DNA from: Bigelowiella natans CCMP2755
Taxonomy: Eukaryota > Protista > Cercozoa
DNA length: 64,000 nt
Direction of reading: 5' to 3'
Assembly (NCBI GenBank): GCA_000320545.1
Contig: ADNK01000421.1
Coordinates: forward strand, 1-64,000
Below the pieces are notes generated by a model that was not told the DNA's origin, made no database searches, and was given only the letters and a program-made list of their open reading frames with translations. Shown one piece after another: positions 15,753-54,180 of this stretch (position 1 is its first letter; every line of letters starts with the position of its first letter). Both the position numbers and the translations under genes were made by a program.

Positions 15753-16395
15753 TTGAATATGAAAAAACTTTGATAATAGTTCTGCGTCATGCTCATTAGC
15801 TGTGTCGTAGAGGGAATCTGTTCATGCTAGTGATTGTGTTGAGATGAGATTCTGTTTGATTTCAGAATCTATAATCATTTCGAATGATAAAAGTTCTCTA
15901 AGTATGAATCACTAATTGTAATGAACAACTCTATCCACTTAGTACGGGTCTCTGAAGTCCCGCTTCCTACAAAGGTTAATTGTGAATGGAACAGTGCGAG
16001 ATAAACGGCTGCTAGGGTACGACATTCGTTTTTCTTTCGCAGATGTCATATCTGCTGTTGTAACGAAGGTGAGAGAATTGTGGTGTTGAGTTATGGTATA
16101 TACTATGCACAGGTATGTCAGTGTGTCGATAGCTGACCTATGGTACTACATTTTTTGTTTTGTTTTTACTTTACGTGAAAGAGTGATCCCAAGGTGTTAG
16201 TAACGTCTTCGTGTTATTTAGGCATCGCTGTGCAGGCAGTAGACCGACTACTTTAGCAAAGACTTTTCTCACCCAGGTATACTTTGCTCAATCTACGCGC
16301 CGCATGCTAGCATGATGTAAGCTGGTGACACTGATAATTTGTTGTTTGTTTGCAGATTCCTCGACACCTTGTTGACGCTTGTGAACCTAGAATAG
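13614..16395 (+). CDS. Hypothetical multi-exon protein; coiled coil, C-terminus weakly reminiscent of sorting-nexin Nexin_C
   Basis: Chain of + strand ORFs with short GT-AG introns (14552, 14979, 15318, 15591). Peptides KIVLDFIDE, LLQQLLNRHLK and FLDTLLTLV. Start and last exon phase uncertain. Confidence 0.45.
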
Positions 16396-16489
16396 AGCTC
16401 GAGACCGGGTCCTTTGCAAACTTTTGCTCAGAAGATGCTGCTTATGTGCCATTTTAGTCATTCGCAATTTTAAAGCCAGAATCGAAATG

Positions 16490-17050
16490 CGTTCAATTAA
16501 TGTTTCGTTCCAGACTAGATAACAATTCTAAACTTTTGCTGGTATTGCATTGCTGATTGCTGCATGACTGTACGTAGTCTGTTTCAACAAACGTGATGTA
16601 CCTGCTATGCTTCCACGCGTGCATTAATTGCACTCTAGCACTGCATGGATGCTCAGCGACAACTCGGCTCCCACGCGCAATGCATGATGCTATAGGATGG
16701 CTAGATCTCATCGAGATGGCTAGATGGCATGCGCAATTTAATGTGTCCATATTATTCCAGCTGTTTATTACAACACGCACATGCTAGCTTGCTAGTAGCC
16801 AGCTAGCACATGCCCAGATGTACACGTAATTTAGTCATAGATCTAGAGATGCCTGCTTGTGCTATTCGCTTCCTTTAACACACAATGCTAGCTAGCTACG
16901 CTATTGGCCCACCTTCTTCACACCGTCTAGATCTAGAGACGTACATCATAACAGATCCACTAGAGATAGGCGACATACTACTAGACTAGCACATGCAGCA
17001 GCTGTGTACATCATCCACACCGCGATGCTTCGCCGATATGCATCGTCATG
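16490..17050. repeat. Intergenic CTAG-footprint domain
   Basis: Exact NNNN-CTAG-NNNN at 16635, 16720, 16843 and 16981; gatg-CTATAG-gatg at 16690. Confidence 0.8.
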
Positions 17051-22465: not shown

Positions 22466-23520
22466 GGGCGAATCAGCAGACTCTGAAAATCCTTTCTGAC
22501 CCCCTTTTGGAATTCTGGAATTGCTCATCTGGTGCACTTTGCGTTCACGCACTCACCTCGAGCGCTGCTGCCAACCAACAATGCAAGCACTTGCTGCTGC
22601 ACGAAGTTTCGTTCAAGGTCCAGCTGGCTCGCTGGAGGTGCGAACGTTCCAGCATTGCCAGATTGGACAATGGACACAGGAATCCTGCATGTGGAACATG
22701 CACGCAGCATGGCATTCCCTGCTAGCCTGTCCACAATTTGGAGGCTCCAGTGGTGCACCAACCTGCACACCTGCTGGCCTGGCTAGCTGGTGAGGCAAAA
22801 AACAGCACCAGTGGTGGACGTGTGCAACGATGCGTTACTCTGTTTGCTGACTGTGCACACAACTCTGAAGATGTCCAGGCTGTGAAAACCTGCCTAGCTA
22901 GCTAGCTAGCTGGCTAGCTGGCTAGCTGGGCGGTCAGGCCAACCGGGTGCGATGTGCGTTGCCGGGTCGATCATTGCGTGCACAGCTAGCAGACATGTCA
23001 GTGTGGCAATGCGTGATTGGCTCGTGCTGCTCAAGTTAGGCACACTGGCATGCGTGGCGCACATCGTCGCGATGCATCGTCTAGATCGTGTCGATCACCG
23101 CTAGACCGCCTGCCGCACCATCTAGCCATCTCGACCCAGCTAGCCAGACTAGCAAATCTGCACGTTCCAGCGTTGGCGGTCGCCATCGAGCTGGCGAGCG
23201 CGCAGAGCTAGAGTGCCAGGCTAGCACGGCTAGACGGCCTGCTGCTACTAGCTAGCTAGCCCGCCGGCACCACGATTCTGCATCAATGCGAATTGATGGT
23301 GCTTGTTCAAATGTTGGAAAGGCGTGCGCCGCGTGCTTGCCTCAAGCTTGTGCCTGGCTAGCGGATCCACTAGTGGTCACAATACGCTGCTGCTGCAAAG
23401 GCAAAAGAGCTTTCGTTGTGACAGTTTGGTCTCCGTGTTTTTGCACGTGTCTCTAGCTAGCTAGATCTAGACAAGGGATCTAGACATGCACGTTCACACC
23501 AATCAAAAGACATCAGACAT
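22080..23520. repeat. Intergenic TA-depleted, CTAG-footprint domain
   Basis: No TA in 22172-22722. Footprints at 22722, 22783, 23101, 23122, 23140 and 23230; CTAG/CTGG array 22894-22929. Confidence 0.9.
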
Positions 23521-23540
23521 CGACCATCTACCGACTGTTT

Positions 23541-26500
23541 CTAATCATCTGCAACATGGAACATGTCATCGAAGAATGTATCCACATGCTCAAGCAAACG
23601 GCTCTCATCTGTCCTCATTCTCACCAAAGTTGATGTTTCTCCCACACGAAATTTCATCAACAGATGGTATCTGAAAATTGTTATGAAAAGAATAATCAAG
23701 GCGCGCGAGTGGAATTGTGGAATTCAAGGCGTCATGTTCACACCTTGGAGGGAGAAAAAGTGCCATTCTAACCGAAGTAATGGTCGATAGTTTCTGCAAA
23801 TTCACATATTATTTCAATTAAAGTTAAGAGACCAAAAAGTATAACAGCATACCTCAGTTGAAACGTCATATTGAGTTGATTCTGCCTCATCATCACCTCT
23901 TCTCTCATACCAGTAGTATCTTTCACCAGATAGTTTTGTTGAATATTGCATGTCACTTGAAGACGGTCTGGGTTTGAACGTTGCATGCCTCACCAAATAC
24001 GAACGAAGATACAACTTAATCCGCTCAATTACCCTCTTTTTAGGAAGGATTAACAGCTTCACGGATTCAGCTCCGCCTACACTCCTTTTCGGTGTATTAT
24101 GCGGAGCTGCCGCCACAGATTTGCTGCTTCGACTGCCGTTCTTGTCTCCTCCCGGAGGATATCCGAAATTTATTCCCCGCAAAATATTCTTCCATAGAAG
24201 CTGGAACAGTATGCTTCGCAGCAGGGTGTCGGTGTCCCGTCCAAGTAAAGTTCTTGGCAGTGATGATGTGCCTTCTTTCTTGCCTTTCCTGTGGCTTACG
24301 CGAGACCGGTCCAAATCTTCCCCACGCACGAGTTTCTTCCGTTCCCATGCCCTTCTTACGCTTGGTTCCCAGGATCTTCTGAAAGATGGGGAGATAGGAA
24401 TCGGCAGTAGTAGATCTGCAAACTTAATTGACAAGGGTTCTAAAGAGCCTCTGCATGTATTCCCAGCCTCATCGTTAAATAGTATTGTCGTTCGAAAGCT
24501 CGACGGTGCAGGGAATCTTGGTGTCAACGCCACAGTGAATCTGTACACGAATGGAAATCGTGCATAAGCCTTAGCAGCTGCAACTGCAGCTGAGTTTTTC
24601 TCACTTGTGCTATGATGATGATGATGATGACGACGATGATGGTGATGACCGGAAGTAATATCAATCGGACGCCGTCTCAGATACGGTAGAGTGATAGGGC
24701 GGAGAGGCGAATAATTCTGTGTTGCGTGCAGCTGAACCATAACGCCGAACATCTGTTGTGGAAACGATGAGAAGAAGAGCTTCGATGGGTTGTTGATGTT
24801 GCTATCTGCTGTCTTCAAATCGTCTCCTCCTCCTCCCATTCCGAATAACACAGGTCCTCTAGAGGAATACTTCCCACCACCTTTTCTCTCTCTCGTGGAA
24901 AAAGAAGAGGAAGAAGACACAGCGACCGCCTTTAACTCCCCCCCCCCCCTTTTCTTCTCTGCAGAGCTACTACTAATCCCTAAATCGGAGGAGTGTGCTT
25001 GGTTGACTCCGCTATTAGAGGCGAACATCTTGCTTGATTCCAGGTCGTAGAAGATGTAGTACTCTAACAGTAGACGCAAGTGTGGGTGCTCCGCATACGT
25101 TGCCTCTCCGTTTGCATCTATATCCTCCTCCCTTGCCTCCAGCAGCCGTGCATAATCATTCAGCAGCGCCACCGCTCGGAGCTTGATCGAAGTTCGTCCT
25201 GGTTTGTGGGTGCTTGACACCGCCCCTCTTTTATCAGACTTTACTGAGGAAGACTTGGAAGATGGGGAGGACGAGGACGGGGACGCTTCTGTAGTGGCTT
25301 TCGAAGAAGAAGAAGAAGAAGAAGAAGAAGAAGGAGAAGAAGAAGAAGGAATAACAGAGGATGATGATGCCGACTGTAATGATGACGCAGCAACACCGCT
25401 ACCACTACCACCACTGTTGCTACTCTTTGCTACTGCTTTGGAATCGCTCCGGCCGCTTATCCTAGTGTCTTCAATAATGGTGGGTATTAGATCGAAGCCT
25501 ACTCTCATCGTATAGTCGTAGAAGAAGGCGCCATCGTCGTCAGAAACACAAGCACCACTTTTATTTCTCGTGCTGCTGCTGCTGCTGCTGCTACTGCTTC
25601 TGCCCTCGTTAGACTCATCATCACCCGGGTTGTGATCCAAAACTCCAAATGGGGATTTATAGCCAGGTCGCGCAACCACCGGAGCAATCTTGATGATCTG
25701 GCTGGTGTGGGCATGATACAGAAATTGTAGCTTGGGATACTCAACGCTTAGGCCGTGGTCTCCAACCTGCATCATCGTGTTGCTGCTGCTGCTGCTGCTG
25801 CTGGAGGGGCTGGTGGTACTTCTGCCGCTGCTCAATCGTGCGAAGTTCATTGGGAAGATGATGGCGGCAATGTGCGACAACGGGCAGCAATTGAGAAGGC
25901 CAAAGTACATCCCAGCTCTATCCCGCACATCGGTATCCGTGTGAAAGGACGCTACCCGCCCAAGCACCTCGACTAACTTGCACTTGGGGGCGATTTGGGA
26001 TTTGTTACCAAGAGTCCCCGGAGTCACCATGAGGGAACGGCACACCTCCAACAGCGCTTGGCCTGACCTCCATCCCGACAACGCAAGGGGGGACTGCACG
26101 TAGCTTTCAAGCACTTTGAGAGCAGCGGCTGCCACCTTGTGTATGGGAGGTGCGTACTGATGATCGTACTCATGATGACGACGATGATCACGGTGTGCAA
26201 GCGTTGGTGGTATTGTTAATGGCGACGATGGTGATGATTTAGCGACATCGTCACCATAGCTTTTCCTAGTCACAGCGCGTACAATAAGAGGGAAAAACCT
26301 TCTCAGCCACAATGGGTTAAGAATAGTTTTTGCTTCAGTCCTACTGCTGCTACTACTACTACTACTACTACTACTACTTGTTGTTGTTGTTGTTGTTGAG
26401 CTGGAATGTGGATTTCGCCTTGTCTGCCTCTTCGTAGCGGTTTTGGAGCTGCTATTCGTCATCACAGCTGGTGGGTCGTCATTCCCCTTTTTGCTCCCCC

Positions 26501-28075
26501 CCCTGCCCATCATCTGACCGCTCTTTGCACTACTTGAAGAAGATTCACGTGTCTTCTCGTCTCTGCGTCCGTGCGTCATCGGTTTCGTCTTCATCTTCTT
26601 ATTCTCCTCCCCCCCCCCCCTCCCCAGCTTGTTCCTCTTCGCCTTCTTTCTGTCATTGATGATTATTGTACGAACGACCTCAAACAGAAACTCCGCCCCA
26701 AGAATGGCCACAACCGAGGCCCTTGGTGATTCCGTGATCGGAACGCATGGGGACCTGCCATAGCTACTACTACGTGGTCGTCGTCGCCGTTCTCCTCCTA
26801 CCCCCTGATCATTCTCAATCTTTATCGTTGAGGAGGGGGAGGCGGAGGAGGAGGAGGATGCTGTAGCTGTATTCTTCTTTTTAGTGTCATTGCTACCACT
26901 AGCAATGCTATGATGACCGGCCGGCTGGTATGATGATGATGATGATGATTGTAATAAAGAAGAAGAAGAAGAAGAAGAAGATGATGATGATGACTCTGTT
27001 GCTATTGTCGGAGAGATCCTCTTATTTTCACTACTCGCTCCTCCTCCTCCTCCTCCTCCTCCTCCTCCTCCTCCCCCTCTTCTCACCGAGCTCCTGTTAC
27101 TGCTGCTACTAGCATTGCTAGAGCATGCATTCAATATCGTGTTATCGAATAATATTTGAAGGTTCTCAGGGTCTTGGTAAAGGAGGTTAAGGAGAAGATG
27201 CCTCTCCCTTTTAGCAATTGAAGGATCCACGTCAATAGCTAAAAGAGCAACCTCCATACTCGCCCTGCGTATCGCACCTCCCTCTCTCCTCTCCGCTGAT
27301 GCAGTTCCCGCCCCCATTCCCTGAAGCAATCGGCGAAGAAATCCATCTTCAAACGGCATCCACTTCTCTCTCTTCACCCCTCCCCCCTTACACTCGTCGC
27401 CATCCGTACTACGGCGGCTATGTTGGGGTGGGGGTGAGTGCTGGTCGCCGTCATTCCTCCTGTGGAAACGTGCGAATGAACCGAGGAAAGCCAAGGCTTT
27501 GAGTTTCCGGAGGGGGAGAGAATCGTAACAATGAGGGGTCAGTGCGTCTCTTAACACGTGCAGCACCTGTCAGAATGGGAAACACACATATTCTTCGCTT
27601 TAGGATATGATATATAACACAGCAGAGACACCCGGTGATCGAGGATTTGCTGTCTACTGCCCGGGTACTAAGAGTTTGAGCGAACAGCTGCGAGAAACAG
27701 CACTCAAAGACGTTTTTCGTTGTATATTCACATTATGGAGCCATTATTAGATTTAAAATATAATAATAATGATAATAATAATAATGATGATGATGATGAT
27801 GATGATACCTGCGCTGCTTGATTCTGAACCCCACCATCATCATCGTCTTTCTCTCCGCTCTTATTACATCTTGCAGCCCCCCCCCCGGAGGCAAAAGCGT
27901 ATCTTGATGCAAAGCTGAGCCAGTAGGTGATGATGAAGGCGTCGTAGGGTCTTCCTGACAACACTGCTTTGTGCTGAAGAGAGTTGGCAAGCTGCTTTAT
28001 TTCGATCAAACGTTCGGTGTCATTAAACAGTGCTAGTGCTGCTGGCTGTGTAGAAATAACCATTCTTCTTTCCCT

Positions 28076-32143: not shown

Positions 32144-32875
32144 TTTTGTTTATATTTTCTGTTACACAATCATTGGCAACCTTTCCTATTGAAAGCAGCT
32201 ACCACATCGTCTCACCATCTCGCGAAATCATCATCATCATCATCATTATTTCATCATTTTTTGATGATTAGTGCGACTAATCGTCCGTCATTGTTCTCTT
32301 GACTACCAATACATCAAACACGAGGTGCTGCAAAAGGCCTGGGTACGATGTCTAAACACATAACAGAAGGACTCAAACAATATGATATGTGCTATGATAG
32401 AAGAAGAAGAAGAAGAAGAAGAAGAAGAAGAGTGCAAAATACATGCACACTATCATTCATTAGTGAAATAGACCGACCTCAAGTTCCAATAGGCACTCCG
32501 CAGCAATTCTCTTAATCTCGGGCGAGATCTTCTTAAACGCCTTCACATCAAAAAACCCGCTTTCCAAAGACGATGATCTACCAGTGTTATCCCCGCTCTT
32601 GCCCCCATATCCAATATGGCCTGTTGGTTGAAATGGCCAACAACGCATTGATTTGTAGATTTTACAAATAGAAAAAAACACCCAACGGTGGCAGTTGCTA
32701 TCGCCTAACTATCAGCGGGGTTCAGCCGAGTTATGGGAAAGAACTTCGTTGTCGCTTATTCGCAAAACCGTATATTATTGTGCTCCTACTTGCATCAGAT
32801 GATGACCCTTTGTTAATGACCGAAGCGTTGCTTTTGCTTCTTCGCTCTTTCGCATAACGCTTTCTTCCTGCACAA

Positions 32876-32911
<36 letters not shown>

Positions 32912-33815
32912 ACGCTACAACAGCAGCTTTTATATTTTGTTGTTCTGCTGTCGTTCATTGTCCCGCCCTCAAGGGAAGATAGGTGGCGATTGCAGGGACT
33001 TCACTATAAACAGTGTTCGTCTTTCACTGTTGATACACATGTTTGCGGAAGAGTAGTTTCTCGCATATTGTTAAAGAGGAAATTCTTACGTAATGAGCTG
33101 CTGTCATCGTCGTCATCGTTCTGGGATGGCATCATGCCTTTGAGAAACCCTAAGAGTAGCTCCACGTACCCTATATTTTGTCCACCGGAGAATAATATTT
33201 ATAACGATGATGACAACGACGACGACGATGATGATGATGATGATGATGATGATCATGATGGCTACTGCTCATAACAAAACACCATGCAACTTCTAGTAGC
33301 ACGCATCCGACTAAAAGACCTAACAGAGCAGTGCCATCTTCGATGTGTACTGCTCGCATCAGCCGGCATTCGTCCATTTGCTTGTTGTTACCTTCTAGCA
33401 TATCCGGGTGGCGCGTAATCGCATTTCGTTCAATGAGCAGAGTAACCATCGCCACGAGTAGCTACACATCATCGTTATTTGTCAAATCTTGTTAGTGACA
33501 GGATACCCATTGAAATTCGTGGAATCGATGATTATACAAACACAAAGAAACTATTTTGCAAAGAATCTTCTGATTAGTCTGATGAGATGATTATTTCTAA
33601 CTGACTTGCGACACAACAGCATCTGGCAATTTATGCTTTCGTTCAATGAGTTGTCCGAAGACTTGCCAGCAACGATATCTGCGGGGCAGGGGGGGGGGGG
33701 GTAGTAGAATGAAGAAACGCGGCAGGTTATCTTGTTTGTCCATTAATAAAAGGAGGAGGGACAAAATACTAGTCAACAATATCGTTGAAAGGCACTATGA
33801 TATGATGCAATTCAC

Positions 33816-33850
<35 letters not shown>

Positions 33851-34714
33851 CCAAGCTATTTTGCAAGTACACACAAAGAATCTTACGGATAACAACAATA
33901 AACTATTCTGCAATCAAGACACATCTTGGAGCTGCTATATTACGTTGAGGCGTTGTCCCTCACAAGGTCTGGAATGTTTTCCGCCAAAAATGTAATTAGA
34001 TTTATCAAAACCACGGGCTCCGACTGATAGAAGAGGAAACGAATTTTTAATGAAGAATCGGCACAAAGACTAGAAATACCCAATTTCGTAGCACGTCTTT
34101 GGATTTCATATTCCAACATATTCTTCGTTATGTCTGTGCGTCTGTGAGAGCGGACGTGTGTGTTGTATGTGTATGCTTATCGCATTTTTTTGTATAATCT
34201 TTCTCCCTCAATGTCGTGCATTGCGTGTTCTTTTGCTGCTTTTTATCATCCTGGCCCGTAGTAACAGCGCAGCGCGTGCATGTGTATGTATTAATGTGCA
34301 AACGATTGATTGTACAAATGGTGGGTTGGTAACCGTGCAGAGGATGATGGAGAGGATTTCGTGCAGATACCTGTTTTAAACGAACGCCATATGTAAACTT
34401 AGTCTACGTGACATTAGTGCGTATCCACATTCAATTCACAATCATTTGTACGCTCGAACTGTTCTGTGAGGGGTGAGTAATTAGTACTGGTTGCGAGTTC
34501 TTAGCCCACGAATCTCCGCTGCAAGCTGCTCTGACCATCGAAAGGCAGCGGCAATGGTGTACACCTGCAGCACCTGATAGACACGGAGCAAAGACGCAAC
34601 ATGAACGACCCATGAAGGAATGGGCGCCTCCCTAGGGATAAAAGAATATAATACAAACACTGCAACCTCTGATTCCTGCCGATCAGTCATCGTTTGGATG
34701 CGGCCAGGCGGCAA
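23541..34714 (-). CDS. AP5B1: AP-5 adaptor complex subunit beta-1; 5' boundary approximate
   Basis: DTDVRDRAGMYFGLL adaptin motif, PRFPAPSSFRTTILFNDEAGNTCRGSLEPLSIKFADLLLP, ESVKLL, and terminal FLPPR|YHLLMKFRVGETSTLVRMRTD...DD* (stop at 23541). Upstream exon RIAAECLLELE. Confidence 0.85.
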
Positions 34715-34959
34715 TGAGAATACTCGAGGAGGAGGGAGGAGGACATCTGAAGTAATCTTGATCTCTGTACGACAAAGAAAAAGTAGGAAAATGCGGTGCT
34801 ATTTTATCATGCGACAAACCGAAATTCATGTCGCATCCATGGGTTATCAGGCCGTATCCTGGACGACACGAAGTTTCTCCCGGAATGTTATCGATGTGTA
34901 TAAACTTAGGGGATTTTAGTTAATTATCGCATTTTTATGATGTCGCTCGGTAAAAATAG

Positions 34960-35470
34960 CGGAATTGCATGCATCGCTTCCGGCCAGCAGGGTTGTTGCC
35001 TTTAACTGCTTGTTTGCTAGCTTGTTTGGCTCAACAAATGACAATGTTGTTCTCAGTGGATAGCAACATGCTGTGCACCCAGGCCGTGCATCTTCCAGAC
35101 CTGCGCGTGCGTTCGCGATTGCATGGTTGTTGTGTGGTGTGGACGCATTCCATCCGCCCCATTTGGCTTGTTTGTTTGGCCATCTTCGCATGACGTGCTA
35201 GCCTGCGCATGCTGTGTTGCCTGTGAATCTGGACATGCCATGTGAACAGCCAGCACTCCACATTGCAGCTAGGTCATCGTGTTCTGTGTTGAGATGTCCA
35301 GATCATGCCATGCTAGCATGCTGCATCCATGCAAATTATTGCACAGCAGTCTAGCAATGCTAGAATGCCTAATCATGCAAGTCTGTCGTGAATCTCTTCT
35401 GGTCTTCAAGCCAACCTTTTTTTTGTGGTGGCACGTCATTAAATCACTCTCCACGGAATCGGTCATGTGA
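34960..35470. repeat. Intergenic TA-depleted, CTAG-footprint domain
   Basis: Footprints at 35313 and 35360, decayed tctt-CTGG-tctt at 35399, few non-CTAG TA dinucleotides. Confidence 0.8.
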
Positions 35471-39048: not shown

Positions 39049-39715
39049 AATAATCTTAGAGTTTCTCGAGACCATGTTCCCTGCTACGAGCATATGTATG
39101 AACGAAGATTCTATAGTGCTATTCCATCGGTAGTAAAAGTCTCAAATGATTGAAGAAACACTAGCAGAAAAGGAAAAACAAAATCTTTCTATCACCTCAA
39201 TTGAAGACAGAAAGTCATAATCGCTTTTCTTTGATTGGGCAGCCTCTAACGGCCCTGAGCAACGTCAAAAGGTGTTACAGATGCACAATCACACGGACAA
39301 TCCATTGTTATTTTCCCTCACGGTGCTACTTGAAACAACACGAGATAAATGAATAGAGAGAAAAGAAATTTGGTTGACTTTTTCCTTAAATTCTTTGCAA
39401 TGATTCACTATCATACTACAAATATACAATCTTCTTCTTCTCCTTGGCACATTAAAAAAGAAAAATGTGTAAAAGCACACAAACACACACACACACACAC
39501 GCGCGCGCGCACACCACACAAATCATCTTATACAACGATACGCAAGGAGTAAAGTACAACATGACAATGTTTTCTGAGCAGCAGCGAATAATACTACCCA
39601 CGATCGTTCGTATTCCAAGAGGTGATGCGACGATAATGTCGGAATTGTAAAAATCCGAAAAAAACTTGACAGACCCCCTGAGTATTAAAGCAAATATATT
39701 AGTCTTAATATATCA

Positions 39716-39773
<58 letters not shown>

Positions 39774-39993
39774 TGTGTGTGTTGCATATAAATTCGAATT
39801 ACCGATTAAGTGAGATCCCAATACGAAAGGCGTCATCCTAATCCACCATTATCATCATCTTAATCATAACATCTTAATCATTGGAGCAGCCCTTGTCACA
39901 ATCATATGCATCATCGTTGCGGCATTAGCCACTCTTCCATACTTTGTTTCCTTTGAATGTATCTGCCCAGTCCATTCCCTAGATTATAATCAC

Positions 39994-40025
<32 letters not shown>

Positions 40026-40771
40026 GGATACTACTGCTATGCATGCTGCTAGAGTAGCAATTTTGTATATTTCCACCACCTTTTTCGGGTCGCATTTTTC
40101 ATCGGGATCTGGACCGTATTCTTCCTTCATTCTCTTGCGATTATGCACCTATAAAACATTAACCCTCAATAATATCTACCTATTGACAGCACAAGACGAT
40201 GGACTCTTACTACAACTACCCTCGACGTTATCCAAACAATGATATTTATCATACTTTAAAGTTGTAATACCTATGCGCGGTGCACTACACCTACTACTAC
40301 TACAACTATGTTCATTTCTTCTATTTCTTCTTTATCTTCTTCTTCTTCTTCTTCTTTAGTTACTTGTTTCTTCTGTGAGTCTGGCATGAGCCTCAGTAGC
40401 ATCGTCATTAGCTCATAGGCAGCATTACGAAACGGAGCGAGCAGCAGCACCCTCGGCCTGGAACGCATCAACAACAATCACCATTTAGTGAAACAACTTC
40501 GTTTTGTTGTGCAGTAGCAACGGTGCAGATTGTCTCTTGCCTGTATTACCGTGTAAAACCTTGGTCTTTGCACTCAGGAAGCTCAAATTCTTCTCCTTGG
40601 TGAACGTCTACTCCTCGTCGCCGTCTCTTACCTTGCTTTCTCTTTGCCTTTATCTTCTTCTTGCTGTTACCCGTCTCCTCCTCCCCCCCCTCCTCCCTCC
40701 TCTCATTTTCGCCTTTGTGCTTTTGTTGTGCGACGCCTCCTCCTCTTCCTCCCTTTTTATCCTACGATGGC

Positions 40772-40810
<39 letters not shown>

Positions 40811-41450
40811 TTGGTGGGGGGGGGGATCAACGATTCAAAACCACATTATTCAAAATCACATTATGATGCAATATTCACATTATGACGCGTTCCAACCCGC
40901 GGGAGGGGGGCGACAGGGGAGTCTTACAACAGAAAGAAGCAGCAACGTCATCACCATCGGTGTACTTACTACTTGAGTAGCAAATATTAAGATTTAGATA
41001 GCACCCTTCTCTTTGCATCCTCGAGCGCCTCCTGATCATCAAGTTCCTGCTGTTTTCTTTTTATGCGGACATTGACCTCGCGAATACTCTTGGCGTTCTT
41101 CGTCACAACAGCACGCGCTTTAAGCAGGTGATTGCATATATGAAGTATCAGCCTAATCCGATGAGGAGGGGGAGAAGGGGATGATGATAGAGTGGTAAAT
41201 CAGAGAGTGGGCAGTGGCATCAGAAGCTGGCTAAAAATAGCATGGCTAAATTGCATGTCGATCCGTGTTTCCGAAGCAAGCATATAGCCTTCCTTTCTTT
41301 ACTGCAACGGTGAAGAATTAATCTACCGCAGCCAATGAAGTGGAGAAAATGCAATGTGCTGCTTGCTGCAAGCAACCTCCTTATTTTTCAAGCAAACGAC
41401 GAGAAACCATGCGTGCGCACAATAGCCCTTCAAACGTACGAAAACGATCA

Positions 41451-41547
<97 letters not shown>

Positions 41548-42003
41548 TTGTCGGCAAATGCGCTTCTTGTCTGGGGTTTCTCCAGCGTACCACACATCCC
41601 TTACATTAAGTCCGATGAGCGATGATGATGATGATGACAATAAACGATGGCAACGACACTTCTATGATGTAATAATAATCGGACGCTGATGATTATGACG
41701 GTAATGATAACGAAGAAATACATATGAGAATTATTAAGCTTAGCCAACATGAAGTTTTAATTCGATGTGAGTAGTGACGTCTGTCAATACCAATATTCAT
41801 TCATATAGGGAAACACGCCGCGTTGTATCGGCCCTTGTAGTGCTTGTGTACTTTCTCTCAAACCGTCCTTAAATAGACAACACACAGAGAATGAGCCAGT
41901 TAATAATGCATGATGCTGGCGAAAACATCGATTTCTATTTTAGAATGTAAATTTGCACACACATGTACTATACCCTTGCATGTGTATACCTCTATGTGCG
42001 TAC

Positions 42004-42046
<43 letters not shown>

Positions 42047-42061
42047 ACTCATATACAAATA

Positions 42062-42102
<41 letters not shown>

Positions 42103-42526
42103 CAATACTATAGCATTACCTTGGGATGTTCTTTCAAACCCCGTGCTCTGCGCCATTGATCAATAAGCTTCGGATGAATCTTGTATGAATCAAGATATTT
42201 TCTAGGAATTGGATGGTAGTGCGGAGCCTTGCATCCGGTCTTAATGGTGGAAGAAGTTGTAGCATCATCATCATCAGCAGCAGCAGTATTTCCATTCCCC
42301 GTTTTCGAAGCATTCTTCGTCGTTTTCATCTGCGACTGCTGCCGACATTTCCAAGCTGTATCTTCCATTGCAACATGAGAGTCACCAAACGCTGGCACGG
42401 TGCATGGATGGTATGTACGCGGCTTTGTCAGGAATGATTTCACTTCTGTTGTGCCGTAGCCCTTAGCAATGTATATCACATTCATAATCATGCGTAGAAG
42501 AGTTGTAACGCCAATCTACAACTTAG

Positions 42527-42578
<52 letters not shown>

Positions 42579-43208
42579 GCACCATCCATCGTGATCGATG
42601 GAAATACATCTCCTCCAACCATCACCACCACTGCTACTACTCCTCCCCAATCCCTCTCCAACCTGGGCGTCGAGATATATCGATTGAAAGGGGTCAATAT
42701 CCAATGCCGCCTCCTCTACCGAATTGCCTTTTTTTGTACATTGGTGCATTTGTTTGCATTAAAAAAAATGGGGGACGGAGGTGCTACAAACAGACCATAA
42801 CCCCATTTCTAAATTTCCATCTTGCTACTCCTCCACCCTCCAAATATGTTATCACCCCCCGTCCGTGTTCTACCAGCGCAATCCATGCCTGCTTCTTCAG
42901 GCTTAACGCTATCCTGGTCCTCAATGCCCCCCGCCTCCTCTGCTTTTGTTAGAAAACCAAATTTGTGTTGAATCTGTAGTTGACATACAAGTTCTAATTT
43001 TGCAGAATGTTCATCCCTGTCTACCGTCATTGTTCGACAGCGTTGTAAGTTGCAGCGCTTGCTTCTTCACAGAGACTCGCTTCTCTTTCCCCCCTTCTCG
43101 TGTGCGCTTCCTTCGAGCCTTCGCTTTTGATTGCACTGCAAAAGTTACGCATGATGTGATACACTCATCATTCAAAGTAGTACACGCTCCCCGCAGTACC
43201 TTTCCCAT
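35576..43208 (-). CDS. UTP25: U3 snoRNA-associated protein 25 (UTP25/DIEXF)
   Basis: Exons LHICNHLLKAR..KN, RPRVLLLAPFRNAAY, YSDFYNSDIIVASPLG, NFLSSIEV, QNWE, TDFSRV, DFVRVRNY, ERFYFFKRYRIRG and LYTKYDVLSLARIVGEQRAQRM. Start MGK at 43208. Confidence 0.9.
41455..41543. repeat. Compound (CA)n(TA)n microsatellite, representative of dozens of intronic (TA)n, (GT)n, (GA)n, (GAT)n, (CTA)n and (GAA)n tracts in the window
   Basis: Directly visible. Similar tracts at 3050-3102, 14200-14281, 31617-31680 and 39717-39782. Confidence 0.95.
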
Positions 43209-44080
43209 TTTTCAAAGCCGCCAGTAGTCCCGTGTAGGCCTTCATCGCAGAGAAAAGTAATTGGGCATAATTATGTCCTTTTTCTATCCTGCGACAATGA
43301 TTTTTAGAAGTCGCATCTAGGCATGACGATGATGATGGTGACGGTGAGAACGAACGGAATGATGCCATTCCATTCATTCGAACAGCCACGAACGCATACG
43401 CACCACTAGACCACGCTAGCACGGTCAGCACATGCTCGTTTTGTTTGTTCGTTCAGTTCACTCATTCTTTCATTCATCCAGTGATCCTCTCAGCTGCACA
43501 CGAGCCAACAATCGATCAATCGGTGATGATCAATTCCAGAATCGGTGGGCTTGCATGTCAGCTCGTCATCCGTTCGCACGTGAGCACAGCGCGATGAAGC
43601 TGGACTAGTGGAGGCGTCCATCAGGCGATGAAACTCTCGTGCAAAGCCAGGCAGGTGGTAGCCTGGCGCATTGCATGGTTGGACAGCGTCGCTGTGTGCG
43701 TGATGGGATCTGGCCAGCTGGGGAAGGGACGTGCTAGCGTGTGAGCAGTGTGAGCTCTAGCTTCGATCGCTGTGGGCGATGTGTGATCAGGAGCTTGTCC
43801 AGCTTGTGCACGATCGCTCAATGACACAAACGAAATTGCCATGACTTGACTTGACTTGACATGTGAAGAAATTGCGCGCTGAACTGATGAACACTGCTAG
43901 ACTGCTGCGCCACCTGACGACTAACTAGCTAGGTCATGCAGATCTAGAGATCTAGAGATGCTCTGGTGCATGCTGGCATGCTAGCATGCCAACATGTAGC
44001 ACATATAGCTAGCTAGCCAGATGATTGTCCAGTGCTAGCTGGCTGGAGTGCTGCACGATGACTGCCAGACTGGATGAGTC

Positions 44081-44250
44081 TGCTGCCAGTCAGCAGTCCA
44101 TCTGCTCTGCTAGTCTGGTCCTCAATGCTGGAATGCCCCCCGCTAGCCCGCTAGCCCGCCTCCTCTGCTCACATTCTAGACGTTGCATTGCTAGATTGGA
44201 AGACCAAATTCGTGTTGAATCCGCAGTTGACATGCAAGTCACAATTGCAC
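44081..44250 (-). pseudogene. Decayed duplicate of a UTP25 exon/intron segment (42870-43005)
   Basis: 44196-44239 matches 42949-42992 at 38/44. 44115-44169 matches 42914-42944 apart from three 8-bp insertions. Confidence 0.85.
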
Positions 44251-44465
44251 TCTCTAGCTCTGCTAGTCTAGCTAGCTAGCAAACTAGCAGTCTAGCAGCA
44301 GTGCGTGGTGTGCAGAACAATTTGGCAATCGCAGTCGTCATGTTAGCATGCTGTAGCGCTAGCCGACCACGTTAGCTGTAGCAGCTAGCACGACGATGCA
44401 CTGCACTGCTAGACTGGTGCACGTGATCTAGAGATGTCTAGATGGGCAACGCAGCAAGCACGTGT

Positions 44466-44659
44466 GTGCGCAGAAAAATCACGCTCCCTGCTAGCCTGGG
44501 CAATCGAGCGATGCTGGAACAAAGAACATACACATTCACATGGTGTGACGTACTGCGAGTGCGCAGATCACGCTCTCTGGGCAATCGAGCAATGCTGAAT
44601 GCTGGAACAAAGGCTAGAAAGCACATGCACATTCACACAGTGTGACTGCTAGACTGCGA
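44466..44659 (+). repeat. Degenerate ~95-bp tandem duplication (44466-44558 / 44559-44659)
   Basis: Both copies read gtgcgcag..atcacgctc.ctg..ggcaatcgagc.atgctggaacaaag..acat.cacattcaca..gtgtgac..actgcga. Confidence 0.9.
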
Positions 44660-44823
44660 TGCAAGCGTACGTAGCTAGCAAGCACATCTAGCATCTAGCT
44701 AGCTAGATGCATGTGTATGGCAGATGCTGTAGATCGTTGTCAGCATCATCACTACTTGACCGCAGCAATGTCGACATCTGCTTCTCACGTCAGCTCTCTA
44801 TATCTTGCTAGCTCTGCTTTTGC

Positions 44824-45052
44824 GCTGACGTGAGCAAAAGGTAGCAACGTGTGGGAGTCTTCGATCATCAGGAAATCACCGCCGATGCCACAAGCTAGCA
44901 AGTCCCACATGCATCGCTAGATCAGCCGCGCGCGATATCGTTTCGAGAAGACAACGTCACACACGAGACCAACCGTATGACGTTGATCCTTCGATCATCA
45001 TCCTTTCAGTCATATCTAAAAATCCAAAGAGCATCACCGGTGTTATCCAACG
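44824..45052 (+). pseudogene. Possible highly eroded histone H4 relic
   Basis: Collinear gapped resemblance to H4 coding segments (SGRGKGGKG; VLRDNIQGIT; LEN..D.VTYTE; TAMDVV), followed by a partial histone-type stem-loop accggtgttatccaac. No open frame. Confidence 0.3.
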
Positions 45053-45292
45053 TGCTGAATTTTAGTTTTCAGAAAAAGCATTGACTGCTGATCATTGAGG
45101 CTAGTACACGTTATCGGTGCCTAGCGCAAGGTTTCTGACGACCGTTGTAGTTGGAGAAGTTTGATTTTTTATGACTAGCATACATTCGGCCTGGAAAGGC
45201 TGTGTCGTTGTTTTGTTCATCTACATTTGGAGTATGTGTACAGTTGATTGGGGCATTTGCTTCAAGCTAACCAGAATTTCCGTTTAAATAAT

Positions 45293-45311
45293 GGTGGTGT
45301 CATATGACACC
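45293..45311 (-). terminator. Histone 3'-UTR stem-loop of H1 (GGTGTC-ATAT-GACACC-ACC)
   Basis: 6-bp stem, 4-nt loop and ACC tail about 33 nt after the H1 stop. Same stem as the element after H3. Confidence 0.8.
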
Positions 45312-45343
45312 TTGGGTTTTTAGTTTGTTGAGGAAGAGTTGAT

Positions 45344-45808
45344 TTACTTGCGTCCCTTGGTCTTTTTCTTGGTGGTCTTCTTCTTGGAAGCAGCCTTTTT
45401 CTTAGGAGCAGCCTTCTTCTTAGGAGCAGCCTTCTTCTTAGGAGCGGCCTTCTTCTTAGGAGCAGCCTTCTTCTTGGTAGTCTTCTTCTTCTTGGAAGCG
45501 GCCTTCTTCTTAGGTGCTGCCTTCTTCTTAGGAGCAGCTTTCTTCTTTGGTGCAGCCTTCTTCTTTGCCTTTGCCTTGAAGGAAGGATCCAGCTTGAAGG
45601 ATTGCTTAATCTGGACGAAGACGCCCTTCTCAACTCCTCTCTTGATTGCGAGACGGAGGGCAGACTGGAAGGTAGCCAAGTTCACCTTGAAGTTAGCAAG
45701 GATGTACTTCGAGATAGCTTGACGGGAAGCTCCCTTGCGTTGCTTCAGCTCGATGATTGCCGCAGCAACCATCTTCTGGTATGTAGGGTGAGCAGCTTTG
45801 GGTGGCAT
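45344..45808 (-). CDS. H1: Linker histone H1 (154 aa)
   Basis: HPTYQKMVAAAIIELKQRKGASRQAISKYI...GVFVQIKQSFKL globular domain and PKKKAA-repeat tail. ATG at 45808. Confidence 0.95.
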   Translation of the reverse strand: MPPKAAHPTYQKMVAAAIIELKQRKGASRQAISKYILANFKVNLATFQSALRLAIKRGVEKGVFVQIKQSFKLDPSFKAKAKKKAAPKKKAAPKKKAAPKKKAASKKKKTTKKKAAPKKKAAPKKKAAPKKKAAPKKKAASKKKTTKKKTKGRK

Positions 45809-47060
<1,252 letters not shown>

Positions 47061-47082
47061 ATTTCCTCAATCAAATCACACC

Positions 47083-47100
47083 GGTGTCTCAGACACCACC
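47083..47100 (+). terminator. Histone 3'-UTR stem-loop of H3 (GGTGTC-TCA-GACACC-ACC)
   Basis: Hairpin 22 nt after the stop, with a stem identical to the H1 element and an ACC tail. Confidence 0.8.
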
Positions 47101-47129
47101 AATCTGAAGTTGAAACTTTGAGCTATTGA

Positions 47130-48560
47130 TGCCACGTACTTGATTGAGGCGGACATGATTGCCTGCCTTCCATGACATCATTGGGACTGTTTTTTCTCAA
47201 AGCAGTTGATTCGAATTCCCTCAGTCTGCGTGATTGCCCACACATGCTAGCATGATCCTTGAAGACACGGAAAGATGGGACATTCCGATGTGCAATCTAG
47301 ACATTAACATGCCCTTCCCTAGTTCTAGCGACACATGTGAACTCAAGGCTGCTACCGATGCCCTTTTTGCCAGGCAACGATGTCAAGATTGGAGAGGCAA
47401 TCCACAAGAACTCTGAATCTTCAGGTGGAAGTGATGACGGCTCCGTCCCAACTAATGACGCAGATGCTGAAGAGAAGAAGCAGTGACTCAAGAAGTAGAT
47501 CACCCTCTACATCCTCACTCTGTCCACCTCTAAATGTAGCCCCTCATTTCCCCCCTCCGCCCAACACCTCAATTCCCATGATGTCACCATGTTCATTCTT
47601 CCACCAACCGATTCGCGTTCCATCAATCTGTGCTTTGATGCAATTGGATTGGTCACGCTGCATGGTCAACTAGTCAAGAAAACGTCGTCCATGCATGCAT
47701 GAATGTGCATTGAATCTGGCCATCTTAGCATCATCAAATTGCACCGTGTTTCACCATGCACTTGTGAAATCACACGAGCTAGCGAGTGTGCACATGTGCA
47801 GTTGTCAGCAAGGCACACTGTTGGACGACACGCTGCGCTAGCGGCACGGAGAAGCACATGCATTCCGTTCGGCAGTGCCAGAGTGTGCAGCCTGCTAGCC
47901 TGACATTGCGAGATTGTGCGGTGACTAGCTAGCTAGTGATGCAGTGACTGGCGGCGGAGCTCACTAGCTAGCTAGCTCAGCGAGCACGCACGTGCAGCTC
48001 AGAGCTGCGCTGCGGCCGTGGAGCACAAAATGCAATTCAATCCACGAAATTGGCACGCTGCGCCATCTAGCTAGCGCTAGCCTTGCCACTCCACAGCTCT
48101 AGACATCTAGACATGCACAAAAGACTCCATTTGTCATTCTGGAATTGCGCCCTGGCCGGTGAGAGTGAGGCCGAAGCTAGCTAGTGAAGGCATTCTAGCA
48201 TTTTGAATCGACTCATCAAACAAAATTCATACAAAACTTGCGCAAAGGAAACAACTCTCCATGTGTCATTGCTTGCATTTTGGACATATGGAGGCGCAGT
48301 GCTTGCGTGCTTACCTAGCTAGCTAGTCATTACGTGCTTGCGTGTGCTAGCTATAGCTAGTGTGAGACGGATGCAATGATGAAGTGATTGAATCTTTTCA
48401 ATGGACATCCCAATGTGCAGCCATTGCTGCAGCTAGCTAGCTAGCGTCCAAATCAAGGGAGTATGCTAGTATGCATGCATGCATGCATGCACATGTACAC
48501 CACTTTTTGTAACCACAAGCGTTTGATTGATTGTATCGTAGCTAGCAGAAAAATAACACC
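47130..48560. repeat. Intergenic TA-depleted, CTAG-footprint domain between convergent H3 and CBF5
   Basis: Footprints at 47247, 47779, 47895, 48107, 48195 and 48466; (CTAG)3 at 47925, 47964, 48315 and 48433. All TA in 47730-48228 lie within CTAG. Confidence 0.9.
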
Positions 48561-48628
48561 TAGCTATGTCTCTCGGGCTTTGTGTCGCATATTTGTGGGA
48601 TCCCTGCTATTTTTGCCAGAACGGTGGC

Positions 48629-50481
48629 TTACTCTTTATTTTTCTTCTTCTTCTTCTTCGCAGATTTATCCTTCTTAGCTTTCTTCTTTTTTGGCTTCTC
48701 GGTACCATCCTCATCCTTCTTTCTCTTCTTGTTTTTCTTTTCGGATTTGGGGGTTTTAGGGGTTGAAGGTGGGCTCTTTGAATCTGCTTTAGATTCGAGT
48801 TCCATAGCACTGGCTGTCTTTTTGCCTTCAACCATACCACCTTTGGTAAGGTCTTTATATCCCATTTTCCAATCTTCTGGAGTATTCTCGTTAACTTTGC
48901 CGTATTTGTCAAGTTTTCCCTCCTCAATCAGTTGTTTTTTCTTCGCAGCAAAAGGTCCAAGTCCCCATCTACGAGGGTATGTGTCTCGGTCCATTATCAC
49001 CCGCTTAGCTTTCGCAACCAATCCATGTTCACAGGTCAAAATCTGAACCGAAGTCATTTGTGCGATAGAAACACTGACTGCTTCCCCCTTCGTCGTAATC
49101 ACCACAATTTCCTCCCCAACCTCAATATTATCTGAAAAGCGGAGAACACCCGGAAGCATCAATTTAGCGCCATAGCACAGTGCGTTAACAGCAGAGTCTT
49201 TGACAACGATGCGTTTTAATGGCTCAAGCAGCTTCTCCATAGGCATAATTACTCTTCGAAGGTAGCTACGGAGGAGGAGACATTATTAGAATTTGTAGGT
49301 ACGAATGTAAATTCAAAGAGTTATGCTTACGATTCATCATCCTGGTGCTTCCACATCCACATTGCGTCAAGAATGTCGTGCATCGTGACCATGTTATCGT
49401 CCTCGCCCAAATTTCCTGTTCTCACACGTCGAAGTTCCTCCATATGTCCCCCAACCTGGATATTCATATTCCCGCCAAGGTCAATAATTAAGCATTCGGT
49501 GTTTCAACGACGAGTAGGTGGGAAAGTAAGGCTACTACATTACTATTATTCTTATGACTATTGTCATCATCATCATTATTATTATTATTATTATCCTTTT
49601 TATATAAATTATTATACCCCCAGTAGATATCCGAGATGCACACAGAGAGTCCTAATGTAAGTTCCCGCCTGGCATTTGACCCAGAATACTCCCAAGCCAC
49701 GCTCACTGTCAAATTCAAGGAGCTTGCTTTCGTATATGGTGCGGATGCGTAGCTGTCGTTTCACAGCCGAGATTAGGGGAGGGCGTTGCCATAGAGCACC
49801 AGTTAACTTCTTGAGGGCCTTATTTACTAACTTCTCATTTGGAACTTCTCCATGGAGTCTTAACACGCATACGTACTCCTTCCCTGCACTTTGTTGGGAC
49901 TTAACCATACGAGTTGCTCTGTCGCAGCATACAAGTAGATTTCCTGTAACTTTGGGGTCAAGAGTCCCACTGTGTCCAGTCTTTTCAACCTCCAGAATCC
50001 GCTTTAGCCAAGCAACAACCTCGTGAGACGATGGATTTGCTGGCTTGTCCAGATTTATCACACCATATCGCAAGTAATCCCTCATTTTACGTTGCAAGGG
50101 TGAACTTCCGCTCGGAATTGGAGTATAATGTCCACTCCGAACAAGCAACTTGTCATAATCCTAATTCCACAAATCAGTGTCAGCATCTTTATCACCATGC
50201 TCATGATAATATGTAAAAACCTTCAGAAGGAGAGGCCAGCCTGATGTATCCGCTCTTGAAACTTCATTTGAAGGTTTTATTTGGAAGGTTTCACCACTGG
50301 AATCCGTTTTAGAAGACGACGATGCAACGACTTTTGGACTTTTGGTCTTCTTGTCTTTTTTTGATTTCTTTTTCTTTTTCTTGTTTTCCTTGGTATTGAT
50401 AAACGTCAGAGAAGAAAACTAATGAAAACTATATCTTTGTATATCCATGCAAATCACCTTGGGAGTGCCGTTCTTCCCCAT
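48629..50481 (-). CDS. CBF5: H/ACA RNP pseudouridine synthase dyskerin/Cbf5
   Basis: [41 protein letters not shown] domain and K-rich tail. ATG 50481, short GT-AG introns. Confidence 0.97.
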
Positions 50482-53689: not shown

Positions 53690-54180
53690 TAGCTGTGCGT
53701 GTAAGCACGCACACGCCTTGATAATGAAAGTGTTTCAATGAGTTTCAGATATGGCAGATTAATAATTAAATGACGTACAGATACGATAAGTAGTGCTAGA
53801 GTGGTGGTGCAGTCTAGCAGCAGCATGCAAGGCCTAGAGATGTGTGCGCATTGTGCCTGTGCCCGCCACACAACACACGACGACGATACGATACAACACA
53901 TTCTAGCATTATGCACAATAACGTACAGCAGCTCATCGTCTGCTGTCATGTCGTCGGCATTGTCACAGTTGCTTGTGCGTACAATTCACAGCAGCTGCGG
54001 TGAGAAGTAATAATGCAGTGAGCTGTGTACTACTCTAGCGCCTACATACGTCTCGCTGTGTGCATCTGCTAATGCATGTATGTGGCGGCGTGTGCGGGCG
54101 CAGTCCGGGTCGAAAGGCGCATTGTTAGCCAATCATTTGCAACAATGCTATGCTCGCTGCGTGACTCATCACACACCCGA
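53690..54180. repeat. Intergenic CTAG-footprint domain with weak TA loss
   Basis: agtg-CTAG-agtg at 53796 and catt-CTAG-catt at 53903. Confidence 0.7.

Follow-up and report, generated by a model that had tools for sequence, protein, structure and literature searches.

The window, a 64,000-bp stretch of the Bigelowiella natans genome, contains several genes whose 3' ends face silent DNA densely populated by one short sequence arrangement, in which CTAG is enclosed by two identical copies of four variable bases (N4-CTAG-N4, hereafter a scar). The features discussed below are as follows, with CTAG runs of three units written as (CTAG)3.

16250-17050, no strand: fourth and weaker scar island, 5 perfect scars
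22600-23560, no strand: third scar island, 11 perfect scars, lying directly past the AP5B1-like gene's 3' terminus
23814-27566, minus strand: AP5B1-like gene, its 3' end adjoining the third island
35309-35371, no strand: two isolated scars (CATG, AATG)
about 42870-43000, plus strand: copy A, the empty state, lying within a transcribed minus-strand gene and devoid of 8-bp blocks
43313-44902, no strand: main scar island, 18 perfect scars and two (CTAG)3 sites, or 34 events with one mismatch allowed
43940-43959, no strand: double scar AGAT-CTAG-AGAT-CTAG-AGAT, in which one copy of a duplicated target was hit again
about 44100-44230, plus strand: copy B, the filled state, a diverged duplicate of copy A within the main island, with five extra 8-bp blocks
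44139-44159, no strand: double scar CCCG-CTAG-CCCG-CTAG-CCCG
44891-44902, no strand: scar CAAG-CTAG-CAAG (CTAG at 44895), in the transcribed 3' UTR of H1
45347-45808, minus strand: linker histone H1 gene (Pfam PF00538, E 1e-23; identified from its translation and covered by RNA), its 3' end facing the main island
47700-48560, no strand: second scar island, 10 perfect scars, including (CTAG)3 at 47929, 47968, 48319 and 48437
53792-53914, no strand: two scars (AGTG, CATT), directly beyond the 3' end of a 704-aa Exo_endo_phos ORF

The main island occupies a head-to-tail spacer, extending from the poly(A) end of H1 to the point (~43300) where the neighbouring minus-strand gene begins, with an RNA depth of ~0 across 43382-44527. 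RNA reads place the end of the H1 transcript near 44733, and an RNA contig spanning 44733-45440 carries the scar of the H1 3' UTR with zero differences from the window. No other record of the exact H1 protein was found. On the opposite side of the spacer, RNA at the copy A locus derives from the minus-strand gene only, with an intron at 43136-43199; the name UTP25, given to this gene by the first-pass annotation, finds no support among the 18 ORFs of 39349-43431, which are without a Pfam hit. The second island is flanked on one side by a plus-strand gene whose 3' end lies at ~47774 and on the other by the 3' end of a dyskerin-like last exon. A search of 42500-49000 against Rfam returned no match. 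Separately, DNA contigs of equal depth disagree with the window across 46650-47040, mostly at multiples-of-3 spacing. This pattern suggests that the genome holds, at another site, a diverged second coding copy of this gene; RNA reads over the same interval show additional variants of their own.

The proposal that non-genic DNA is densely remodelled here holds in quantitative terms, with scar DNA making up ~15-17% of the main island and with 34 events, one mismatch allowed, against 3.4 in simulation. Islands carry 11-13 scars per kb, compared with ~0.27 per kb in silent, neutral Harbinger relics of the same genome, where one of the 23 indels between paralogues is a scar. This contrast in density argues for regional targeting, not tolerance alone.

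Scar counts, step size and target preference

Position-by-position re-checking found all 40 of the CTAG starts listed earlier to be exact N4-CTAG-N4 sites. The window total is 53, comprising these 40, three further sites (22914, 22922 and 47670) and ten occurrences of CTAG-CTAG-CTAG. Removal of low complexity of period ≤4 before scoring leaves 43 non-repetitive sites, such that 43 of 225 CTAGs (19%) are repeat-flanked, compared with 0.93% for all other 4-mer centres. Simulated windows of Markov order 1, 3 and 5, which retain 2-, 4- and 6-mer content, yield 0.7-1.0 sites with a maximum of 5; for 43313-44902, the same kind of simulation yields 0.05-0.7, against the 18 perfect scars that the first-pass annotation had counted there. 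The excess of N4-CTAG-N4 far above chance is confirmed.

CTAG alone is enriched when centres are compared under control of composition, and it is the sole outlier among all centres of 1-8 bases between identical 4-mers, with the next-ranked GCTA, TAGC and TCTA representing the same sites read in a shifted frame. The product is uniform in both of its parts. Flanking repeats around CTAG measure 4 bp in 53 cases, 3 bp in five and 5 bp in one, and exact products account for >95% of scars, with the partial products CT, AG, CTA, TAG, CTG and CAG occurring between repeats at background level only.

Tandem CTAG units follow a distinct parity. Sites of the form N4-(CTAG)k-N4 number 93, 0, 3 and 0 for k = 1, 2, 3 and 4, and CTAG runs comprise two units in six cases, three units in 17 and four units in one. 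A run of three arises when the same event takes a CTAG as its target, and the parity of run length therefore indicates an 8-bp step rather than slippage. Old scars have been re-targeted with the identical 8-bp step.

Target preference was determined by stripping the perfect scars from four islands and comparing the 4-mers used with all 4-mers available. The pattern M-N-N-K fits 39 of 46 targets versus 27% of the background, with C at N1 in 63% and G at N4 in 72%. Across 77 scars, positions -1 and +1 are enriched for C or G (S); G-CTAG-C is the commonest junction form, and CATG contributes 12% of targets, TTAA none. The resulting preference, S|C-N-N-G|S, is palindromic and reads identically on either strand, a symmetry to be anticipated if a two-fold symmetric strand-transfer complex attacks the two strands 4 bp apart.

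Filled and empty paralogues, scar age and fixation

Empty and filled alleles had been reported within the window, and alignment of copy A with copy B shows them to be real. Five 8-bp blocks of copy B are missing from copy A (CTAGTCTG, CTGGAATG, CTAGCCCG, present twice, and CTAGATTG), each composed of CTAG, in one case CTGG, and a copy of the preceding four bases. Harbinger-relic loci outside the window behave in the same way: AAGT-CTAG-AAGT of L044 aligns with an 8-bp gap in L045, its paralogue at 93% identity, and CATG-CTAG-CATG of L048 aligns with an 8-bp gap in L038. Loci L041 and L042 have one scar in common, with another reading CTAG in L042 and CCAG in L041. Three independent pairs of paralogues (A/B, L044/L045 and L048/L038) differ cleanly by having or lacking 8 bp, which demonstrates that the sites are true 8-bp insertions, consisting of a fixed CTAG and a 4-bp target duplication.

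Scars stand out against the base composition of their surroundings. Within the main island, 42 of 62 TA dinucleotides fall inside CTAG; outside CTAG, TA is reduced to 0.13-0.26 of expectation in the islands 43313-44902, 47700-48560 and 22600-23560, with CA and TG raised to ~1.7 of expectation. A published mutator of B. natans converts TpA to TpG/CpA, and the island composition bears its signature, such that silent spacers behind genes also seem to have been mutator targets, beyond viral and transposon DNA. Hypermutation does not extend to the TA inside scars, where CTGG and CCAG variants only modestly exceed other decay products. At the Harbinger-type transposase loci L038-L049, TA is depleted to 0-0.1 of expectation over kilobases; CTAG scars provide most of the remaining TAs and appear younger there than the purge of TA.

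Genome-wide counts were obtained on the 91.4-Mb assembly of 3736 contigs, in which a 30-base reference allele from Table S2 of a B. natans mutation-accumulation preprint (bioRxiv 10.64898/2026.01.13.699255) has an exact match; the strain is therefore the reference strain or a very close one. CATG-CTAG-CATG occurs 3828 times in 91.4 Mb, compared with seven for the reversed control; with CATG at 12% of targets, this implies a genome total of roughly 3x10^4 perfect scars. Scars are spread in age, with 83 perfect duplications around CTAG, ~37 above chance with one mismatch and ~6 with two, a distribution corresponding to a mean divergence of ~5% per site. At the published mutation rate of 3.5 × 10^-10 per site per generation, this divergence represents ~1.5 × 10^8 generations, to an order of magnitude. 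Given the number and age of the scars, ~1 × 10^-4 events per genome per generation are enough, which is an ordinary transposition rate.

Polymorphic 8-bp indels, which the first-pass annotation had suggested looking for in raw reads, are absent from 43000-46802 in two independent DNA runs (2025); contigs of both runs match this interval with no differences and no gaps, and the scars are fixed in the strain. The many read joints are 20-mer repeats common to other islands and do not represent insertions. Among de novo indels from mutation accumulation, 0 of 21 is an insertion of CTAG plus four bases (bioRxiv 10.64898/2026.01.13.699255). With ~3000 line-generations, a figure estimated from published rates, only ~0.5 scars are expected, so this absence is weak evidence and does not imply that the process has ceased.

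Candidate elements and related systems

Inverted-repeat elements of the forms N4-CTAG..CTAG-N4 and N4-CT..AG-N4 were absent from the ~150 kb of B. natans genome scanned. The matches returned were artefacts of CTAG runs, and one candidate, 32352-35293, was dismissed as a chance match with an inverted repeat that does not extend. For the hottest target, CATGCTAG-N(9-39)-CTAGCATG occurs at 215 sites genome-wide; among the matches listed (~1/4 of the 215), no shared internal ends of short deletion derivatives were found, and most are two neighbouring scars.

Transposase domains were surveyed across the genome. DDE_3 (PF13358; Tc1/mariner/IS630) and DDE_Tnp_1 (PF01609) give no hit, and neither do piggyBac (PF13843) and ISAzo13-type (PF07592) domains, for which control genomes are also silent, making the latter two results uninformative. 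Domains present comprise three of hAT type, 15 of Harbinger type (all TA-purged) and 38 rve, the last of which are for the most part retrotransposon pol and ~375-aa integrases and resemble the integrases of retrotransposons and virophages. The usual duplications of hAT and Harbinger measure 8 bp and 3 bp, respectively, and no fitting superfamily is detected among the domains searched.

Two further repeat families are present in the genome. A short interspersed repeat lies at 48360-48424 of the window, at 831-859 and 1342-1370 of locus L036 and in loci L002-L012, with terminal segments of ~38 bases, starting GAGACGGATGCAATG, that form inverted arms; at least 171 candidate copies exist, and read depth is 30-180x. 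On contigs C2149 and C2351, copies adjoin ORFs for hAT transposase, so the repeat with GAGACGGATGCAATG ends is probably a hAT-derived miniature element. Several of its copies are themselves scarred, for example at CTAT and CCAT targets in L012 and L010. The other family is a 1489-aa stop-free frame with an rve integrase domain, present in at least 15 copies (C319, C1145, C1239, C2162 and others) and probably derived from a recently active LTR-type retrotransposon.

No second organism with the scar pattern was found in the metagenomes, viral contigs (0 matches) and other assemblies searched, and the C-terminus of the AP5B1-like protein retrieved no related locus from metagenomes. A set of 22 unrelated metagenome contigs (L013-L034; 34-72% G+C) holds CATGCTAGCATGCTAGCATG as short (CATGCTAG)n arrays of period 8 and contains no other N4-CTAG-N4 sites, so the double-scar word alone is no marker of the process. 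Literature on CTAG footprints and on Bigelowiella yielded no description of these scars.

Among known systems, Tc1/mariner elements (Tc1, Tc3, Minos, Sleeping Beauty) leave a similar anatomy, with both target copies kept and a few terminal transposon bases between them. Their transposases make staggered cuts 2-3 nt inside the ends, and the inverted-repeat nature of those ends renders the footprint palindromic. However, Tc1/mariner duplicates TA only, whereas the B. natans scars duplicate four variable bases in a genome that gave no DDE_3 hit; Tc1/mariner footprints are also mixed, in contrast to scars that are >95% identical. To our knowledge, no genome has been reported with tens of thousands of footprints of the Tc1/mariner type. 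The piggyBac system and the ciliate PiggyMac, which acts on internal eliminated sequences, resemble the scars in their 4-bp stagger, in the rejoining of complementary, TA-centred 4-nt overhangs and in a uniform junction, but piggyBac restores its TTAA target without a scar, whereas 8 bp are added here at C-N-N-G-like targets. A 4-bp target duplication is also made by superfamilies of the Sola, Ginger and Academ/Chapaev types, a comparison confined to duplication length. By contrast, hAT elements duplicate 8 bp and leave flank-dependent footprints, unlike four duplicated bases around a constant CTAG, and PIF/Harbinger elements duplicate 3 bp (TWA) and usually excise precisely, unlike the 4-bp scars. 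The Harbinger relics of B. natans are themselves struck by scars.

Probable excision footprints and rival explanations

On balance, the scars are probably footprints left by the excision of a cut-and-paste transposon that duplicates 4 bp of its target and has CT(A)..(T)AG ends. They have the anatomy of transposon footprints, namely a fixed-length duplication kept around constant palindromic bases, with N4 varying between sites. Each site would record that a cut-and-paste DNA transposon landed once and left once. On landing, the element would have its 3' ends joined to target phosphates 4 bp apart, preferentially in 5'-S|C-N-N-G|S-3', and gap repair would then double the intervening 4 bp. On excision, the transposase would cut a few bases inside each end, such that the flanks retain terminal CT.., CTA.. 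or CTAG..; the flank overhangs could pair and be ligated because CTAG is its own reverse complement, producing N4-CTAG-N4 nearly every time. Landings would fall mostly in silent spacers behind gene 3' ends, where neutral scars would accumulate over roughly 10^8 generations and eventually amount to ~1/6 of such spacers. The near-total uniformity of the product, taken together with a self-complementary CTAG, suggests element ends of CTA.. or CTAG.., not just CT... From these features we infer that a mobile element once lay between the two target copies, that its ends were of this nature and that its departure was followed by rejoining of cohesive ends.

The first-pass annotation had proposed excision scars of a single element family. 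The anatomy, the palindromic target preference and the plausible rates agree with that proposal; an element with matching ends is missing from the ~150 kb scanned, and derivatives are missing among the matches listed. Ordinary end joining usually yields mixed footprints, and the >95% uniformity observed here is unusual for excision. If footprints they are, the scars amount to a record of cut-and-paste transposition that is both very large and clean, numbering ~3x10^4 or more uniform products, from which target choice, regional preference and timing can be read without the element. Excision scars alone could then build a sizeable share of intergenic DNA, ~1/6 of the main-island spacer.

With no parent element seen and no fitting superfamily detected, a process free of any mobile element remains a serious rival, although we regard it as rather unlikely; the first-pass annotation had likewise given an undescribed micro-insertion process as its second option. 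A host enzyme, a domesticated transposase or a topoisomerase-II-like enzyme would make a 4-bp staggered break in spacers, fill-in of the 5' overhangs would duplicate the 4 bp, and healing would write the fixed CTAG, for instance if each of the two 3' ends received an identical short tail and the tails then paired. The extremely uniform product without partial forms is in keeping with such a route, as are the failure to find a parent element (~150 kb) or deletion derivatives among the matches listed and the clustering of scars behind gene 3' ends, which are sites of torsional stress and termination. Type II topoisomerases are established to cut with a 4-bp 5' stagger and symmetric site preference, and filling in of their breaks duplicates the overhang as observed here. 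Such filled-in breaks, however, produce plain 2-4-bp duplications with no fixed filler, leaving the constant CTAG unexplained; we know of no repair pathway that adds a fixed tetranucleotide, and no candidate enzyme was identified. A more specific version, in which no mobile element takes part, a host-encoded enzyme breaks silent DNA behind genes and a dedicated step writes CTAG, so that the process is (semi-)programmed and builds a distinct class of spacer, seems to us doubtful indeed. Should the scars not be footprints, they would represent a previously unknown healing of DNA breaks with a fixed tetranucleotide.

Whether produced by excision or by an element-free process, the insertions account for the palindrome-rich DNA behind Bigelowiella genes and provide strain and population studies with an 8-bp marker that is easy to score.

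The remaining explanations are contradicted by the observations. Selection of GCTAGC or TCTAGA-type palindromes as binding or termination signals behind genes, with flanking repeats as a by-product, would accommodate the concentration of scars behind gene 3' ends and junctions that are mostly G-CTAG-C. It cannot yield an exact duplication of a variable 4-mer or clean 8-bp differences between paralogues, and scars also lie within dead transposase genes and decay nearly neutrally, at roughly 5% per site; we consider it very improbable. Replication slippage with expansion of a period-8 microsatellite, or gene conversion between islands, merits still less credence: Tandem Repeats Finder does call period-8 arrays of 2.5 copies, but only at the double scars, whereas most scars are single with differing N4. 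Microsatellite slippage generates variable arrays without parity, in contrast to CTAG runs in which three units far outnumber two or four and N4-(CTAG)2-N4 is absent, and the metagenome contigs with true (CATGCTAG)n arrays have no other scars. An artefact of assembly or sequencing, such as linker or adaptor remnants, is next to impossible, given that two independent DNA runs reproduce 43000-46802 exactly and that the scar of the H1 3' UTR is present in an RNA contig. A scheme in which adenines are deaminated in pairs at TpA and endonuclease V then cuts was also rejected, as it would give 3' overhangs at TA, not insertions at C..G targets.

A possible insertion signature of a different kind appears in Table S2 of the mutation-accumulation preprint (bioRxiv 10.64898/2026.01.13.699255). 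Within that table, seven among the 13 legible de novo insertions end in ACA (GACA, CAACA, ACA, ..AACA, ACACA, ..CAACA and CATTACA), and a multi-base change gives AACA. Insertions of GACA, AGACA and ..CAGACA separate the Harbinger-relic paralogues L038/L048 and L044/L045, and ACA-ending insertions may constitute a second stereotyped insertion signature of B. natans.
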